Sequence record: KJ019152.1
Length of the DNA: 64,000 nucleotides
Direction: 5' to 3' (one strand)
Part shown: one piece after another, positions 3,842-55,207 of the stretch
How the letters are laid out: every line of letters starts with the position of its first letter
Numbering within the stretch: the first letter of the stretch is position 1
Position numbers and translations under genes: made by a program
Notes under the pieces: model-generated
Told to the model about the DNA's origin: nothing
What the model saw: only the letters and a program-made list of their open reading frames with translations
Database searches by the model: none

Positions 3842-4500
3842 TGACTTATTTTAGAGAGCTACCAAACTTAGAGTACGAAAACTTCCTATCAGATTCCAAT
3901 GGATCTGGTGATTATATCCTAATGAAGAATATCTTCGTTAGGGGAAAACTTCGTGATGACTTACAAAATGTATTAACTCTATTCAATAAGTATATTATTG
4001 AAGAGGATGAGAGGCCAGATCAGATTGCTCTGAAACTATATGGTGATCCAGGTTTAGATTGGGTTATTCGTATGGTGGGTGAAATTACTAACATGCCCAA
4101 CGATTGGCCAATATCTTCACAACAACTCTATGAGTTCTGTGTGGAAAAGTATGATGGTGAGAAGGGTATGAATGGTGTTAAGTATTATCAAACTACTGAA
4201 GTTAAAGACTCACAGGGTAGAATCTTACTAGCAGGTGGCCTCACAGTTGATAAGAACTTCACAATCCCTGATCCCGATCCAGATCACCAGGGTAATATTA
4301 TTAATCCAACTGAACCAGTTACTAACTACGCATACGAAACCAATCTTAACGATAGTAAGAGGGAACTATATGTATTGAAGAAGTCGTTCATTGGTCAGTT
4401 TATGAGTGATATGAGAGATATTAATACATATGGATTCAACTCTGAGTTTGTGAATTCTAAAACTCTTCGTGTGGCAAACACTAGGGTAACCAATCCCTGA
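3841..4500 (+). CDS. gp53: Baseplate wedge subunit gp53
   Basis: YFRELPNLEY, ERPDQIA.KLYGD..LDWVI, WP..SQQL..F...KY. Confidence 0.9.
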   Translation: MTYFRELPNLEYENFLSDSNGSGDYILMKNIFVRGKLRDDLQNVLTLFNKYIIEEDERPDQIALKLYGDPGLDWVIRMVGEITNMPNDWPISSQQLYEFCVEKYDGEKGMNGVKYYQTTEVKDSQGRILLAGGLTVDKNFTIPDPDPDHQGNIINPTEPVTNYAYETNLNDSKRELYVLKKSFIGQFMSDMRDINTYGFNSEFVNSKTLRVANTRVTNP

Positions 4501-13516: not shown

Positions 13517-16306
13517 ATGGCAAGCATTCAATTCCCAGCAAATCCGAAAGTTGGTGATACTTACTACGACGTAGATACAAATATAACTTACACCTGGGAG
13601 GGTGAATACTGGTTTGCAACAGGACCAGGCACAGGTATTGGTGCCACTGGAGCAACTGGAGCACAAGGAAATCAAGGTTCTAGTGGTGAAAAGGGTGAGC
13701 CAGGAACTCGCGGAATTAAAGGAGATACTGGATCTACTGGTTCTACCGGTCCCACAGGTCCTGGTGGTTTTATTGGATTAACAGGTGCAACTGGTCCTCA
13801 AGGTTCTCCCGGTGGTGCTACCGGTGCTACAGGTAATATTGGTCCTTTAGGAACTACTGGTGCAACTGGTCCTGATGGTGCTAGTGGTGCTACAGGTATT
13901 CAGGGTCCTATTGGTACTCCAGGTGGTGCAACTGGCGCTACTGGTTTAGCTGGTCCTCCAGGAAATGTTGGTGCTACTGGTCCTCTCGGTCCTAATGGTA
14001 CTCCAGGTGGTGCTACTGGTCCTCTTGGTCCTGTTGGTTCTACTGGAGCCACTGGTGCTGGTGCTACTGGCTCTGATGGTGCTACTGGTTCTACAGGTAT
14101 TCAGGGACTACAAGGTTCCCCAGGTGGTGCAACTGGTGCTACTGGTATTGATGGTTTACTAGGTCCTATTGGTGCCACAGGTACTACAGGAGCTACCGGT
14201 GTTGATGGTCCTATTGGTGCCACAGGTACTACAGGTGCCACAGGTGAGACAGGTGATACAGGTTCAACCGGTGCTGCTGGTCCTACCGGTATTCCTGGAG
14301 CCACTGGATTTACTGGTCCCGAAGGTGCTACGGGTTCCAAAGGTGATGAAGGTTCTACAGGTAGTACAGGTCCTCAAGGTTCTCCAGGTGGTGCCACTGG
14401 TGCTACTGGTGTTGATGGTCCTGTAGGTTCTACAGGTGCCACAGCTGCTACTGGTGCAACTGGTCCTGACGGTCCTACTGGTCCCGCAGGTCCTACAGGT
14501 TTATTAGGTGCCACTGGTGCTACTGGTGATGATGGTTCTACCGGAGCCACTGGTGCTACTGGTTTTGGTGCTACAGGTGCTGATGGTGCTACTGGTTCTA
14601 CAGGTTCTACAGGTCCTGATGGTCCTCTTGGTTCTACTGGTGCCACTGGTATTGCAGGTGGTGTGAGTCATGTATGGTCACCAGATGTTTCTATCCTAAC
14701 TGCCAACAACTCTTTCCTATTCACCCATGATGTAGACGAAGATATTAAGATCCTAAAGATCTCCAAGTTTAGTTCAACATTCACCAATGAGGAGGCACTA
14801 CTTAATAGTTTTGCAATCGGTGATTCACTTAGACTAACATCAGGTCCAGCAACATTCCAATATACTGTTAGAGCCAATGGTGGACTCACAGTATCATCTG
14901 GTGTTGACGTGTTTATGTTACTCGTCAGTGATGGTTTCTTAGCATCTGGTAGTGGAACACTCAATGGTTCAACAGTTGTTCTTCAACGTCCCACATCATC
15001 CACCTTCGCTACATTTAACTTCGGTGTATCCACTATCAACTGGCCTACTACTGATGGTGATGTAACTATTGACTATCCATTCCTAGTAAACAATGGTCCT
15101 AGGTATGTTGCATTCAATCAGAAGGATCTACTAGGTAGGGATGATGAGCAGTTCTTCTTTGAACCTTTAGTATCTACAGACCTAAACTCATTCCAGTTCC
15201 AGGTTAAGACTACTAACTTCTTCAAATCAGAAATTGAAGGTGGTTACTACTATAGTGATATTGATGCCTATGTGTATCTAACTGATATCACCGAACTATA
15301 TTCAGATCCAAGTAATCCAGTAACCAGTGTGGGTTCACCTTGGAATGTTCAGGTTGTAGGTATTGCCTCCGCCATTCCTGGTGTTGCTGGTTCTCCAGGT
15401 GGTGCAACCGGTGCTACTGGTCCTGCTGGTCCTCCAAGTGGTGCAACTGGTGCTACAGGTGATCTTGGTCCTATTGGTCCCGGTGGTCCTACTGGTCCCG
15501 TTGGTGTTAACGGATCCCCAGGTTCACCCGGTGGTGCAACTGGTGCCACTGGTGCTGATGGTCCTGAAGGTGCTACTGGTTCTACAGGTGCAACAGGTGC
15601 ATTCGTTACTGGTAGTAATCTTGTAGCAGGTATTATCACAGCCACCACATTTGATGGTGATGCCACATCAGCTAATAAGATTAAGACTAACCGGTCCAGC
15701 AGTGCGGCTGTTAACTATCTAACTTTCGTTTCTGATGATAACACTGGTGGTGCCGTTAGTGAAACCCTCAAGACAAACTTGAATGTAAGTTTCATTCCTT
15801 CTTCTGGTGATTTTATCGCTAGTAGGATTACAGCAAGTAACAACTTCTACCTGGGTGGTACTGAGGTCAATTCTTCAGCATCTGAACTAAATGTGTTGGT
15901 TGGTGTTACTGACTTCTTAGATGAAGATAATATGGCATCCGATAGTCCTACGGCTATCCCATCACAACAATCAGTTAAGAGGTATGTTGACGCTAACGCT
16001 TTCTCTGGTATTACTACAGTTAGTATCCTAGTGGGCGCTGGTTCTAGTGATGTATACTTCGCAAGTTCTATTGTTCCAACTACTAATGAGTCTATTGATT
16101 TAGGTAGTATTGACTATAAGTTCAGAGACCTCTACCTATCAGACACAACCATATATACTAACACTGGTGAACTTAGTGTAGGTTTGAATACCACAGCACC
16201 AACCGCAAAGGTTGTTCTTGGTCCAGCACTACAAACAATTGTTCAACAGTCCACTGATTTTGATGACTTTAAGATCAGAATCGCAGCACAAAGTTGGGGT
16301 GGTTAA
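13517..16306 (+). CDS. Collagen-like fibre protein
   Basis: Long G-X-Y tracts rich in GAT/GST/GPx in two blocks; [13 protein letters not shown]-term; [14 protein letters not shown]-term. Confidence 0.85.
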
Positions 16307-17331: not shown

Positions 17332-18419
17332 GTAATAAGTTTCGATTTCATATTCTCGGACTCCCCCATACTGTTACGCATCCAGACTTCTCCGCATGTG
17401 CGTACACATCTAAAGTCTTAAAGTTCGGTAAGATGATGAAGGCACGTGGGCATGAAATCATTCACTATGGACACGAAGATAGTGAGTTGGTTTGTGATGA
17501 ACATGTTACAGTAACTACCAACAAAGACTTAGAGATTGCTTATGGTGATTATGACTGGAGAAAGAACTTCTTCAAGTTCAATACATCGGACCACGCATAT
17601 CAAACCTTCTACAAGAATGCTATTGAAGAAGTAGGTAAGCGCAAACAGAAGAATGATTTCATCCTACCTTTCTGGGGTAGTGGTACTCGTCCAGTTTGTG
17701 ATGCTCACCCAGAAATGATTTGTGTGGAACCTGGTATTGGTTATGCTGGTGGTCACTGGTCTCAGTGGAAAGTGTTTGAGAGTTATGCCATTCTCCACGC
17801 TTATCAGAACCTAACATCAGTAGGAACCTGTAAACAGAGTTGGTATGAGGTTGTAATCCCTAACTATTTTGACTTAGATGATTTCACCTACGCCCCAGAA
17901 ACTAAAGAAGACTATTTTCTATTCTTGGGGCGCGTATATAGTGGTAAGGGCATTGATATTGCTGTACAGGTTACTGAACACATAGGTGCTAAACTAAAAG
18001 TAGCAGGACAGAACCCAGAGAATAGAACTTTCCCACCACATGTGGAGTTTGTTGGATATGCTGATATTGAGATGAGACGGGAGTTGATGTCTAAAGCAAA
18101 GGCATCCTTTGTTGCATCACAATACCTAGAACCTTTCGGTGGTGTTCAGGTGGAGAACTTATTATCAGGAACTCCTACTATCACTACAGACTGGGGTGCT
18201 TTCGTTGAGAACAACCCAGACGGACTAACTGGTTTCCGTTGTCGTACATTCGGTGACTTTGTTGATGCCGCTAATAACATTGACCAGATATCTCCTGCAG
18301 TATGTCGCACTTTCGGTGAGCAGTTTGCACTGGAGAATATTGCTCCCAAGTACGAGAAGTATTTCCAGGATGTTCTCAATGTATATACTGGAAAGGGATG
18401 GTATGAACTAAATGAATGA
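17328..18419 (+). CDS. Glycosyltransferase, GT-B fold (GT4 / group 1)
   Basis: FLFLGRVYSGKGIDIA; EPFGGVQVENLLSGTPTITTDWGAFVE (Ex7E). Confidence 0.9.
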   Translation: MSNKFRFHILGLPHTVTHPDFSACAYTSKVLKFGKMMKARGHEIIHYGHEDSELVCDEHVTVTTNKDLEIAYGDYDWRKNFFKFNTSDHAYQTFYKNAIEEVGKRKQKNDFILPFWGSGTRPVCDAHPEMICVEPGIGYAGGHWSQWKVFESYAILHAYQNLTSVGTCKQSWYEVVIPNYFDLDDFTYAPETKEDYFLFLGRVYSGKGIDIAVQVTEHIGAKLKVAGQNPENRTFPPHVEFVGYADIEMRRELMSKAKASFVASQYLEPFGGVQVENLLSGTPTITTDWGAFVENNPDGLTGFRCRTFGDFVDAANNIDQISPAVCRTFGEQFALENIAPKYEKYFQDVLNVYTGKGWYELNE

Positions 18420-38409: not shown

Positions 38410-38574
38410 ATGAAAAGCAAGTATGTAGAGCTTATGTCCTTATGGAAAAGAGCTATGTCAATGAACAACAAAGAGGAAGCATTCCGTCTAAAGAGTGAGG
38501 CTAACCAACTCATTATAGAAGGGAAGGTAACAGATAGGGAGATAACAGCAGGTAAGTTTATTGGTTGGCGTTGA
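38410..38574 (+). CDS. Hypothetical protein (54 aa, not in ORF track)
   Basis: MKSKYVELMSLWKRAM..GKFIGWR. Confidence 0.5.
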   Translation: MKSKYVELMSLWKRAMSMNNKEEAFRLKSEANQLIIEGKVTDREITAGKFIGWR

Positions 38575-38584
38575 TTGATATAAA

Positions 38585-38746
38585 CTGATTTTCTCATATC
38601 CAGGGAGCACGGGGTGACCTGTTCTCCCTTTCTTTATGCCGATATGGTTTTTTATGAGTTTGGGTCTAGTGCCTGACTGGGTTCTCAGGGGGCAACAAAC
38701 CCCATATCACCCTGATACCACCCCCCTACACCAAACCACAAACCAT
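38585..38746. repeat. Non-coding element copy A (~160 bp)
   Basis: Blocks CTGATTTT, CCGATATGG, GTCTAGTGCCTGACTGGGTTCTCAG and AACCAT shared with the 48414 copy at the same spacing. Confidence 0.75.
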
Positions 38747-38806
38747 TGTGCCAGTTGGACTAGTGGCACAACCCCCCTTGGCAAACCCACAGCAGTCGTG
38801 TATTGT
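38747..38806 (+). promoter_or_regulatory. Cassette 10
   Basis: TGTGCCAGTT-GGAC-TAGTGGCACA; TTGGCA-17-TATTGT. Confidence 0.85.
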
Positions 38807-38852
38807 ATAGAAGTGGAGGGGAGACCCACCACACAAACCATTCACCAAAACA

Positions 38853-39044
38853 ATGACTGAGATTTACACACAACCAACATTCTCAGTTCATTACTCAAGT
38901 GATGAACACGATCAAATCTTAACTGAAACTGATTCTCTCTTTGAAGCAACTTGTGAGTACTACGAGATGATCGAAGATTTAGAAGATGATGAATGGATTT
39001 CAATCTACAATGAAGATTACAAAATCCTCAAGATTTCAGAATGA
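38853..39044 (+). CDS. Acidic hypothetical protein
   Basis: Follows cassette 10. Confidence 0.65.
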   Translation: MTEIYTQPTFSVHYSSDEHDQILTETDSLFEATCEYYEMIEDLEDDEWISIYNEDYKILKISE

Positions 39045-39079
39045 GGGGAGACCCACCACACAAACCACTAACTAACCAA

Positions 39080-39262
39080 ATGAACCGTATCCAAATCAAC
39101 AAAGAACTCACACAACTTCGCGAAGAACGTGAAAAAGCACAGCGTGAAGTTGATAACATTCAAGCATGTATGAATGAGTTGATGAAGAAGCGTAATGAGT
39201 TGGATATGGAACAAGAAGAGCGTTCAGGTCAGATGTTATTCGACCAGATGTTCGGAGGTTGA
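39080..39262 (+). CDS. Coiled-coil hypothetical protein
   Basis: Start refined; ends LFDQMFGG. Confidence 0.6.
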   Translation: MNRIQINKELTQLREEREKAQREVDNIQACMNELMKKRNELDMEQEERSGQMLFDQMFGG

Positions 39263-39291
39263 GTTAGTAACACAAACTATTCACTAAAACA

Positions 39292-39537
39292 ATGAACACA
39301 ACAACAATCAACATTCTCAAATCACTGGACATTCTTTCCACTTTGATTCAGGCATTCTATGAGATTGGATATGAACTTGGCACCTTCTATCGCAACCATC
39401 TTCATTCACATGTGAAGTTTGCTATTGAATACTCTGGTCTTGTTATTCGTGAGACCTATGGTAACCGTCAAGAGTATTTCACAAAACTGAATAACTTCCG
39501 CAACCAAGCTGGTTCATACTTTGTCTATAGCGTGTGA
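39292..39537 (+). CDS. Hypothetical protein
   Basis: Stop TGA in cassette 11 dyad. Confidence 0.65.
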   Translation: MNTTTINILKSLDILSTLIQAFYEIGYELGTFYRNHLHSHVKFAIEYSGLVIRETYGNRQEYFTKLNNFRNQAGSYFVYSV

Positions 39538-40890: not shown

Positions 40891-41400
40891 ATGACTGATA
40901 CTAACAAGGCTCAAACAATTGAAGAGCTGAAAGCTGAAGTTTCTGAACTGAAGGCAGCTAGGAAGGAAGAACTTCTGGCACAGGCAGAACAACGAAAGCA
41001 AGATGAGGAACTTCGTTCACTCGAACTTCAGAAACAAGCTCTAGAAAGTGGTTCCCTCCCCTCCCCCACAGGCACACCCCAGTCACTACAACGTAGGATG
41101 ACTGATATTGAAAACGCACGAGTTCGCACCTGGGCATATGCACTAGGAGCTTATTTCACTGGTCCTATCATGCCAGCTGTGGTGGCTAATCGTACTAAGA
41201 ACTGGACACCTTTCTGGGCTGGATTGGGTCTTGGCATTGTATCTCTCCCCCTAGCATTTGCTGACCTTGGTATCATCTCCTCTGTTCCTGCAGCTGCTTT
41301 AGGAACTGTACTTCAGGCTCAGAAATCTAACAAGAAGCGTGAGGAGTTGGGTATTGTTTCCCCTGAGGAAGCTGACCTCCTCCGGTTCAAACAGTTCTGA
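40891..41400 (+). CDS. Coiled-coil + transmembrane hypothetical protein
   Basis: N-terminal coiled coil; hydrophobic FWAGLGLGIVSLPLAFA.. Confidence 0.7.
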   Translation: MTDTNKAQTIEELKAEVSELKAARKEELLAQAEQRKQDEELRSLELQKQALESGSLPSPTGTPQSLQRRMTDIENARVRTWAYALGAYFTGPIMPAVVANRTKNWTPFWAGLGLGIVSLPLAFADLGIISSVPAAALGTVLQAQKSNKKREELGIVSPEEADLLRFKQF

Positions 41401-48085: not shown

Positions 48086-48417
48086 TTAGCAAACTGTTTT
48101 CACTATCTCTTGTTCTTGCGGGTTCTATCTTACCCGCACAGGCATACCCCAATATCATATATTGGGAACGCATTGATTGTAACCTCATCACCGAAACTAT
48201 CCAGAAGTGTGATAGGTACAATGGGCAGAATGGAGTTTTCATCGAATCATACTACCTGGACATATACACAAACGAACATAGCTTTATAGATCCACGAGGA
48301 CCTGAAATAGTTGTACCTGATGTAATAGAAGAAGAGACACTAGATGATATCCAACCTGATGTAGAATACAACGAACCGATAACAACAACAGACCCACTCC
48401 TGAATGATAGTTACTGA
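48082..48417 (+). CDS. Exported hypothetical protein
   Basis: Signal peptide ending AQA; Cys pair. Confidence 0.6.
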   Translation: MISKLFSLSLVLAGSILPAQAYPNIIYWERIDCNLITETIQKCDRYNGQNGVFIESYYLDIYTNEHSFIDPRGPEIVVPDVIEEETLDDIQPDVEYNEPITTTDPLLNDSY

Positions 48418-48574
48418 TTTTTCCATATTCCTGTCGGCAACCACCTCCTACCATACCCCCTGCCAAACCGATATGGATTTTTCACCTTTTCCGTCTAGTG
48501 ACTCACTGGGTTCTCAGTGGGACCAAAATGAGAATCCACCCCCATACCCCCAGACAGAGCAAAACTCATAACCA
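48414..48574. repeat. Non-coding element copy B (~160 bp)
   Basis: CTGATTTT, CCGATATGG, GTCTAGTGACTCACTGGGTTCTCAG and AACCAT at the same spacing as copy A. Confidence 0.75.
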
Positions 48575-48633
48575 TGTGACAGTTGGATTAGTGGCACACG
48601 AAAGCCCGCAAACCCCTCAGGGGGTGCTATACT
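48575..48633 (+). promoter_or_regulatory. Cassette 23 (CCCGCA subtype)
   Basis: TGTGACAGTT-GGAT-TAGTGGCACA-6-CCCGCA-17-TATACT. Confidence 0.88.
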
Positions 48634-54496: not shown

Positions 54497-55207
54497 CTAT
54501 TGTTTTGTTTCTGAATAATACCATAGGTAACCCTTCCAACGCGAACCCCATTTGATAGAAGTACAAATACCCTTCCCACGATCCTCCTCATTAAAGGATC
54601 TCATCGCATCACTAATAGAATCAAAGACGGGAGTAACATGACCAGTCTTATGAACTCCATAGACTTGTTTCTTATTCTTAGCGTGTTTATGAATCCACCA
54701 TTTGTAACCATATGCCGAACCCTCTCTTGTGATACTTCTCCTGATATTTGATGGCCTACCATTCACATACTCAGCGGCAGCAACCCAACCATGAAAGGTT
54801 TTGATCTTACCCGTTTCCAAGCACCTACACTTGATGACGTTCTTATCATGTTTCTTAGGTTTCTTCTTTCGTTGATAACCCCATCTCCTATCCCCTTTAT
54901 GATATGACTCTTTATTATTCAGCTTCCTAGTCTTATGTTCTAACACCAAATTGTTATACTCAGGGTTATACTTATTCATCCAATATTCCACTCGTTCAGT
55001 AAGCTTATTCTCATTCACTTCTTCTAGTATACGTATAGTAAAGTCATCGGAGTTATAGTAAGATAAGGCATTACTCAGTGGAGTATTTTCCTCCTTATGA
55101 TTTTCCAATATCCCAGCCCAAACTTTATTCAGGGGAAGCGTATCATAACCGATGTATTTGTGAGAGGTTTGTCTATTCAAGATGATGTAGATGTTTGTGA
55201 TGCTCAC
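54497..55207 (-). CDS. GIY-YIG family protein with C-terminal NUMOD1-like repeats (Seg-like, probably inactive)
   Basis: NIYIILN..HKYIG and YN motifs; two C-terminal HTH-like repeats ending GYKW/GYLW; only - strand gene in the region. Confidence 0.7.
   Translation of the reverse strand: MSITNIYIILNRQTSHKYIGYDTLPLNKVWAGILENHKEENTPLSNALSYYNSDDFTIRILEEVNENKLTERVEYWMNKYNPEYNNLVLEHKTRKLNNKESYHKGDRRWGYQRKKKPKKHDKNVIKCRCLETGKIKTFHGWVAAAEYVNGRPSNIRRSITREGSAYGYKWWIHKHAKNKKQVYGVHKTGHVTPVFDSISDAMRSFNEEDRGKGICTSIKWGSRWKGYLWYYSETKQ

Follow-up and report, generated by a model that had tools for sequence, protein, structure and literature searches.

Two intergenic stretches in the early region of a marine cyanophage genome share short blocks of sequence at nearly the same distances from each other, and the question they raise is what kind of element such a pair could be. 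The DNA that we analysed (hereafter the window) is 64,000 nucleotides long and corresponds to positions 1-64000 of KJ019152.1, from isolate Syn7803C25 of Synechococcus phage ACG-2014f, a T4-like cyanomyovirus (Kyanoviridae, Atlauavirus). A first-pass annotation of the window had described the pair as a duplicated non-coding element and had listed as candidates, in this order, a structured non-coding RNA, a replication origin or primase site, and a recombination or packaging signal.

Two diverged copies of an intergenic element

Between 27 and 56 kb the window holds a hyperplastic early region of small plus-strand genes, nearly every one of which is preceded by a cassette resembling the PeSLs, the promoter-early stem-loop cassettes of T4-type phages (PMC2839356, PMC4122927). 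More than 20 copies of this cassette, each about 80-100 bp long, lie upstream of small plus-strand genes at 27200-56200; they combine a TGTGACAG-N8-GTGGCACA dyad, a GGGGG..CCCCC hairpin overlapping TTGGCA, a TATACT hexamer and a ATATTCATACCAAAGGAACC leader. The dyad bears a likeness to a CRP-family half-site pair.

The two intergenic stretches, copy A and copy B, each lie between the stop of a plus-strand CDS (38574 and 48417, respectively) and one of these cassettes, and GenBank annotates no feature over either. Every coordinate and distance that had been reported for them proved to be exact. Block 1 (CTGATTTT) starts at 38585 in copy A and at 48414 in copy B, and block 2 (CCGATATGG) at 38639 and 48468, which is +54 in both. 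The 25-mer core, 23/25 identical between the copies, follows at +25 in both (38664-38688 and 48493-48517), and the cassette dyad starts at 38747 (+83, A) and 48575 (+82, B), directly after AACCAT. When up to three mismatches are allowed, the degenerate 25-mer core occurs exactly twice in the 64 kb, against 0.00 expected from 100 shuffles, and a scan of the window found two exact copies of CCGATATGGWTTTTT. This is a genuine duplicated element with spacing conserved between its copies. A pairwise alignment moves the left edge of the similarity outward by about 13 bp, to 38572 and 48401, so that the element overlaps the stop codons of the upstream CDSs. Its parts are as follows.

38572-38746, plus strand: copy A of the element, extended to the left by about 13 bp (alignment with copy B; nhmmer match 38589-38735, E=1.5e-12)
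38585-38599, plus strand: block 1 of copy A (CTGATTTTCTCATAT)
38603-38637, plus strand: terminator-like hairpin GGGAG..CTCCC with TTTCTTTAT behind it, 3' of the upstream CDS stop (fold and isolate alignment)
38639-38663, plus strand: block 2 (CCGATATGG) and two T tracts of copy A
38664-38688, plus strand: core of copy A, with the GGGTTCTCAG block intact and the AGTGGTGG block reading AGTGCCTG
38688-38746, plus strand: small GGGGG..CCCC hairpin, GATACC (38714-38719) and CA-rich tail ending in AACCAT, all of copy A
38747-38806, plus strand: PeSL-like early-promoter cassette beside copy A (dyad 38747-38770; TTGGCA-N17-TATTGT 38778-38806)
48401-48574, plus strand: copy B of the element (nhmmer match to the right-hand part, 48472-48564, E=1.1e-10)
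48468-48492, plus strand: block 2 and T tracts of copy B, with AACCGA in the -10 slot
48493-48517, plus strand: core of copy B (AGTGACTC..GGGTTCTCAG; GGTGTCTCA or GGTATCTCA in other isolates)
48508-48537, plus strand: hairpin of copy B, GGGTTCTCA-N12-TGAGAATCC (fold; isolate comparison)
48575-48633, plus strand: early-promoter cassette beside copy B (dyad 48575-48598; TATACT 48628-48633; repeat family D13)

The cassette at 38747-38806 lies outside the element and forms the right boundary of copy A, as judged from repeat families D3, D4 and D8 and from the promoter scan. Block 1 resembles ATGGAAAA, the opposite-strand start of a small gene that flanks those relatives lying antisense to their neighbouring genes. 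The hairpin at 38603-38637 was missed by a simple scan because its loop is longer than 8 nt; in sister isolates the position is taken by another hairpin with T6. The look of an intrinsic terminator is confined to this left half of copy A and its isolate variants, and is shared neither by copy B nor by the core. The inner hairpins that had been proposed for the two copies are both present in this isolate, while the TCAGGG/CCCTGA hairpin of copy A is not kept in sister isolates. A proposed closure by pairing of ATGGWTT with AACCAT appears in the minimum-energy fold of copy A and is missing from that of copy B.

Isolates of ACG-2014f differ in what they keep. The core and T tracts of copy A are invariant in all seven isolates compared, while the flanks vary, and the left half comes in three mosaic versions, two with a terminator-like hairpin and one that is copy-B-like and lies beside an HNH endonuclease gene. 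The latter is found in isolate US40, where the putative endonuclease gene (locus L304; KJ019100.1 38189-38656) is immediately to the left of copy A; the replacement of the left half by copy-B-like sequence suggests that endonuclease-associated gene conversion may have taken place between the copies. In copy B of other isolates, positions that are near-invariant in the wider family are mutated (GGGTT to GGTGT or GGTAT), and one pair of its hairpin changes from U-A to G.U or A-U, the sole positive sign of a fold, and a local one. The whole gene block holding copy B is absent from KJ019123, so that an empty-site comparison gave no readable insertion boundary. Three pattern scans of the US26 genome of ACG-2014f (IMG/VR) found no canonical copy.

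Several other features of the window were recorded along the way. A second short repeated leader (GAGGGGAGACCCACCACACAAACCA..ATG; 38816-38856, 39043-39083 and 39255-39295), unlike the usual cassette leader, stands ahead of three consecutive small genes just 3' of copy A. One of the small early genes lying between copies A and B, 169 aa long, is annotated as 'two-component sensor histidine kinase' (40891-41400). A large gene of the structural region contains long GGT-rich repeats with a 9-bp period (13600-15650), which code for collagen-like Gly-X-Y.

A family in three groups of Synechococcus phages

Relatives of the pair were searched for by a core scan of IMG/VR, two looser scans and iterated nhmmer. 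The core motif matched 19 loci at first, most of them not ACG-2014f, then about 44 and then more, and nhmmer returned 115 matches, 77 of them non-redundant, in the loci retrieved. In its canonical form the element opens with an A/T tract and a sigma-70-like promoter (ATGACC-N16-TAGAAT), continues with phased A/T tracts and a core of AGTGGTGG-N3-GGGTTCTC(AG), and closes with a variable dyad and then a tail rich in CA. A consensus built from 63 distinct members reads GGATGACC, a 16-nt spacer, TAGAAT, TTGCAG, a tract of A5-7 or T5-7, CAGG, a T4-5 tract, the core, variable short dyads and the CA-rich tail. The hexamers TAGAAT and ATGACC, with the 16-nt spacer, are each present in 33/63 members. 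The -35/-10 signals stand at a fixed distance of 25-26 nt from the core, with about 20 bp of A/T tracts in between, and of the tracts that follow the promoter, 44 are A-rich and 17 T-rich. The conservation of blocks at fixed spacing, claimed originally for two copies, is strong among homologues as well: 65 sequences align without gaps over 67 columns, in which AGTG, GG and T..TC are invariant. We found no description of the element in Rfam, in GenBank annotation or in the literature searched, and a scan of genome contigs for host copies, with a CTAGTG-anchored pattern that was too narrow, gave five chance-looking matches. Taken together, the data show that the two regions of the window are diverged paralogous copies of a widespread, previously unannotated non-coding element of Synechococcus phages, and that the family is defined by primary sequence and fixed spacing and not by an RNA fold.

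Within this family the window copies are atypical. They lack the GGTGG block, and the first block of their core reads AGTGCCTG (A) or AGTGACTC (B) instead of AGTGGTGG. Block 2 of copy A and its two T tracts occupy the slot of the -10 hexamer and A/T tracts, and the hexamers found there, TGCCGA in copy A and AACCGA in copy B, are the sole such cases among the 63 members. A simple scan found no promoter in either copy and the -10 hexamer is absent from both, which leaves just the T tracts of the canonical promoter-plus-A/T layout. A (G/C)ATACC motif between the dyads and the CA-rich tail is common to the window copies and several relatives.

The core is polar and sits inside dyads that are specific to each lineage and kept in shifting registers, which hints weakly at a hairpin in single-stranded nucleic acid and not at a defined fold. 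Relative to the flanking genes the element is in sense orientation about 33 times and antisense about 29 times, with a constant internal order. In one rare lineage of three contigs the 5-nt centre is inverted (CCACC), and in L293 and L261 it is reversed with respect to the left module; this loop inversion is real but rare, and so carries little weight as a general DNA-level signature. Nine loci have two copies, some of them as direct pairs 0.46-9.8 kb apart. At two others (L015 and L087) the pairs face outward, with one copy at the stop of a helicase gene and the other 5.5-8.7 kb downstream, and these mirror the inverted pair of S-H1-type phages described below.

The family occurs in three unrelated groups of phages, all of which infect marine Synechococcus: T4-like cyanomyoviruses, T7-like cyanopodoviruses and S-H1-like phages. 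Cyanomyovirus copies lie 0-500 nt from the 3' end of a gene for an SF2 (ResIII/DEAD) helicase of about 412 aa. In the isolates identified by BLAST (Syn33, S-CAM8, S-RIM12, S-RIM8, KBS-M-1A, ACG-2014b and ACG-2014g) the element is 300-500 nt downstream of this gene, and in the antisense cases it abuts or overlaps the helicase stop codon. Just 6 of 80 helicase-bearing loci have the element within 3 kb and Syn9 has none there, so the element is not essential for this phage group. In ACG-2014f the helicase gene is directly followed by a minus-strand homing-endonuclease-like gene, at the place where relatives have an antisense copy of the element, and no trace of a remnant was found after it. This gene, annotated as 'cox1-i7 protein' (54497-55207 of the window), is the sole minus-strand gene of the region. 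Among T7-like cyanopodoviruses S-CBP2 carries the element, and in related contigs it follows the terminase gene, close to the end of the genome. No neighbouring gene is constant; those beside the element fall into several unrelated families of unknown function.

The most elaborate setting is that of the S-H1-like phages. In two loci (L029 and L222) the core stands between three direct and three inverted 9-10-bp iterons, and an AT-rich spacer separates two such core-iteron modules, which are about 150-160 bp from each other. The iterons differ between the phages (CCTCACR in one, TCTTACG in the other) and the core is the same. The array begins about 25-40 nt after the stop of a gene for a Zn-ribbon primase-helicase of 820-832 aa. 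S-H1, which infects WH7803, is the closest isolate; its primase-helicase is 64% identical and its layout the same, with a primase-helicase gene of 820-863 aa across L029, L222 and S-H1 and a Pol III beta gene nearby. The two cores of L222 and S-H1 are in inverted orientation. This arrangement, seen in sequence, is the architecture expected of an iteron origin. None of its surroundings (iteron arrays, AT-rich spacer, adjacent primase-helicase gene) is found around the window copies. Two further loci, L276 and L288, have the core within DNA that by eye is rich in repeats.

Two side observations concern these loci. In S-H1 an unannotated origin-like region lies between the primase-helicase and Pol III beta genes (MK105819.1 ~17684-17900; 4185-4400 of locus L310), with CCGTTCGG/CCGAACGG/CCTAACGG iterons, two core-like sites in inverted orientation and a centre that is AT-rich. 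The CCTCACA and CCTCACG iterons of L029 (2101-2357) contain the string CCUCAC, the conserved loop motif of the host sRNA Yfr1, a match which is probably coincidence.

Coding capacity and RNA fold

The claim that no ORF explains the element is borne out by inspection of all six frames. The best frame is open in 55/63 members and none in all 63, an in-frame ATG is present in 25/63, stops are scattered, and the frame of copy A ends after 10 codons. A match to a degenerate coding remnant had been named among the outcomes that would overturn the earlier description; no consistent reading frame was found. We consider a coding remnant or micro-ORF very improbable, although it has some points in its favour: one frame reads ..SGG(L/K/Q)GSQ with wobble variation at GGN, the window has ORFs at 38636-38860 and 48404-48571, and a 21-aa CDS is annotated over the element in Syn33. 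By our own reading, substitutions between close relatives fall mostly outside third codon positions. The Syn33 'hypothetical protein' (Syn33_062; 2507-2572 of locus L136) covers exactly the core of the element, and the absence of a frame open throughout, the scarcity of ATG and the scattered stops make it unlikely to be real.

A structured RNA with a conserved fold, the first-listed candidate, fared little better: it is improbable and largely refuted, and no other non-coding option has less support. Every member can be drawn with local hairpins and the 9-bp helix of copy B shows one compensatory change among isolates, but these signs do not extend to the family. Rfam gave no match at the gathering threshold for the window and nine canonical relatives, and only chance-level matches, none on the core, at permissive E values up to 10. 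RNAalifold placed no consensus base pair in the 65 sequences. Counts of pairing and covariation left all three candidate helices, P1, P2a (GGGTTCTCA/TGAGAATCC) and P2c (TCTC-AGY-GAGA), at the level of shuffled or slid controls. P1, 9 bp around the GGTGG loop, was 70.5% paired against 70.9% in shuffles, with no double changes; the three inner pairs fail to form in 16-28 of the 63 sequences, although AGT is invariant. Folding z-scores for both copies and both strands (-0.90, -1.37, -0.96 and +0.74) were not significant against shuffles. A resemblance to tRNA, seen by eye in a D-loop and a T-loop, was dismissed for want of closing stems, and ARAGORN found no tRNA or tmRNA gene in the window. The window copies are thus very probably members of the family and neither coding nor structured RNA. 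The lesson is that fixed spacing between sequence blocks is no evidence of an RNA fold.

Candidate roles of the element

We favour the reading that the element acts in cis, as DNA, in the manner of a transcription-activated origin, and put its probability at roughly one in three (0.35). Of the roles proposed at the outset, a replication origin or primase site appears to fit the genomic contexts of the relatives best. A host-type promoter would fire into an easily melted A/T stretch, and the core would be the site where a factor common to the infections by these phages, either host-encoded or horizontally shared, loads or primes. Given that ACG-2014f has only two copies, both promoter-less and divergent in block 1, these would be either versions adapted to the lineage, with read-through from the genes upstream, or relics in decay. 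The origin reading is favoured because it would explain the layout of promoter, A/T tract and specific site, the repeated association with helicase and primase genes, the iteron-embedded inverted pair of S-H1-like phages, and both the independence from flanking transcription and the lack of terminators. The exchange of A-rich for T-rich tracts, the two orientations, and the absence of a terminator and of a conserved structure hint at DNA rather than RNA. Several findings count against it. The link to helicase and primase genes is purely positional, the window copies have neither the -10 hexamer nor the GGTGG block, and copy B is mutated at near-invariant core positions in a region that KJ019123 lacks. 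Moreover, the relative orientation of blocks 1 and 2 is kept nearly throughout (the loop is flipped in three contigs), which would suit an RNA equally, and a conserved promoter aimed at a conserved 22-nt sequence also looks like an sRNA gene.

The element resembles phage origins and promoter cassettes without matching any of these systems in full. In the primary origin of T7, promoters are followed by an AT-rich stretch with a primase site, and T4 oriF and oriG combine a promoter with a downstream unwinding element. The canonical family likewise has a promoter, about 20 bp of A/T tracts and a specific conserved site, adjoins replication genes and can be present more than once per genome. However, its promoter is host sigma-70-like and not phage-polymerase- or MotA-dependent, its 22-bp core is common to several phage families, the window copies have no promoter, and it is only a candidate origin. 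Iteron origins beside a primase-helicase gene are known from P4 (ori/crr type) and from IncQ plasmids, whose oriV has paired ssi sites. S-H1, L029 and L222 are alike in having direct and inverted 9-10-bp iterons around an AT-rich spacer by such a gene, with the core central in each array, whereas the window and other T4-like phages have no iterons, and where iterons occur they vary among phages while the core is constant. With PeSLs the element shares its shortness, its repetition as regulatory DNA in hyperplastic early regions, its promoter and stem-loop and its link to modular shuffling. Unlike them it runs from promoter to dyad and not from stem-loop to promoter, lies upstream of a cassette and not directly of an ORF, takes either orientation, is present in one or two copies and not dozens, and extends with its core to podoviruses and S-H1-like phages. 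It is the flanking cassettes (families D3 and D4, more than 20 copies) that have the features of PeSLs, and not the element itself. Finally, the cyanophage RNAs in Rfam (CfrI and the glnA, manA, wcaG and PhotoRC motifs) are, like the element, conserved non-coding cyanophage sequences, but the element has no Rfam match, gathering or permissive, and no conserved fold.

Among the alternatives, a small RNA or 5' leader is possible but doubtful. The 22-nt core would be a single-stranded seed or a protein-binding sequence in an RNA that starts at the promoter within the element, or in ACG-2014f arises by read-through, and that targets a transcript of the host or the phage. The -35/-10 signals at a fixed 25-26 nt from the core would suit this, as would an orientation independent of neighbouring genes with block polarity kept nearly throughout, and a core common to unrelated phages of one host, WH7803, is what a host-directed seed would look like. 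The C/U changes of the left arm stand opposite G and are G.U-compatible on this strand only, and one compensatory pair is found among the copy B variants. Yet a simple scan of both window copies and of Syn33 detected no intrinsic terminator after the core, and none was seen by eye in the relatives. There is no consensus structure, covariation or Rfam match, and A6 and T6 tracts interchange within the presumed transcript. Additionally, the S-H1-like core is embedded in iteron arrays, and the promoter that an sRNA gene should have, conserved in the family, is absent from the window copies. Somewhat less likely still is an operator or insulator, bound as duplex DNA by a regulatory protein of host or phage and placed shortly after a promoter, where two early transcription units meet. 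Pointing in this direction are two 8-bp blocks that begin 11 bp from each other and are separated by 3 bp of free sequence, the local dyads around the core and the constant position between a gene end and the next early-promoter cassette. On the other side, no candidate regulator co-occurs, the small neighbouring genes falling into several unrelated families, and no family-wide fit was seen to LexA, NtcA, CRP or DnaA boxes or to sigma-54 -24/-12 sites. These comparisons were made by eye with the known consensus sequences and are leads only, as are those that turned up no family-wide fit to boxA/nut, Chi, a retroviral-type primer-binding site, a two-tetrad G-quadruplex or a T7-type GTC primase site; an ops/elemental pause site does not fit members whose spacer reads CAA or TCA.

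A promoter cassette that is mobile or recombinogenic, with a PeSL-like role, spreading among co-infecting phages and surviving in ACG-2014f as functionless, decaying relics, seems to us about as unlikely as the operator. PeSLs are a documented precedent (PMC2839356, PMC4122927). Hyperplastic early regions contain several copies, in either orientation, copy A has a mosaic left half that includes the B-like version beside the HNH gene of US40, copy B is variable and sometimes absent, and the distribution crosses phage families. Against this stands the core of copy A, invariant in seven isolates despite varying flanks; a core that stays constant across very divergent flanks and phage families argues for selection on the sequence itself. 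The element may also have a packaging or recombination role.

The GC skew of the window has only a broad plateau near 34-37 kb and is uninformative as an origin indicator. In the literature we found no experimentally mapped replication origin for marine cyanophages, and for Syn9 a review cites only a predicted single theta origin (PMC2984593). That one signal of about 22 nt (AGTGGTGG-N3-GGGTTCTC) is used by the T4-like, T7-like and S-H1-like lineages via one host factor is an idea we hold as unlikely though worth stating; its role would be, for example, that of a DNA replication start or loading site, or of the seed of an anti-host RNA. If true, it would give cyanophages their first common signal for replication or host takeover that is defined by sequence. 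The presence of the element beside helicase or primase genes in three lineages makes it a testable candidate for the replication start of abundant viruses; if it acts as RNA instead, it could be part of a shared interaction between phage and host. In either case, the element is useful as an annotation marker for hyperplastic early regions.
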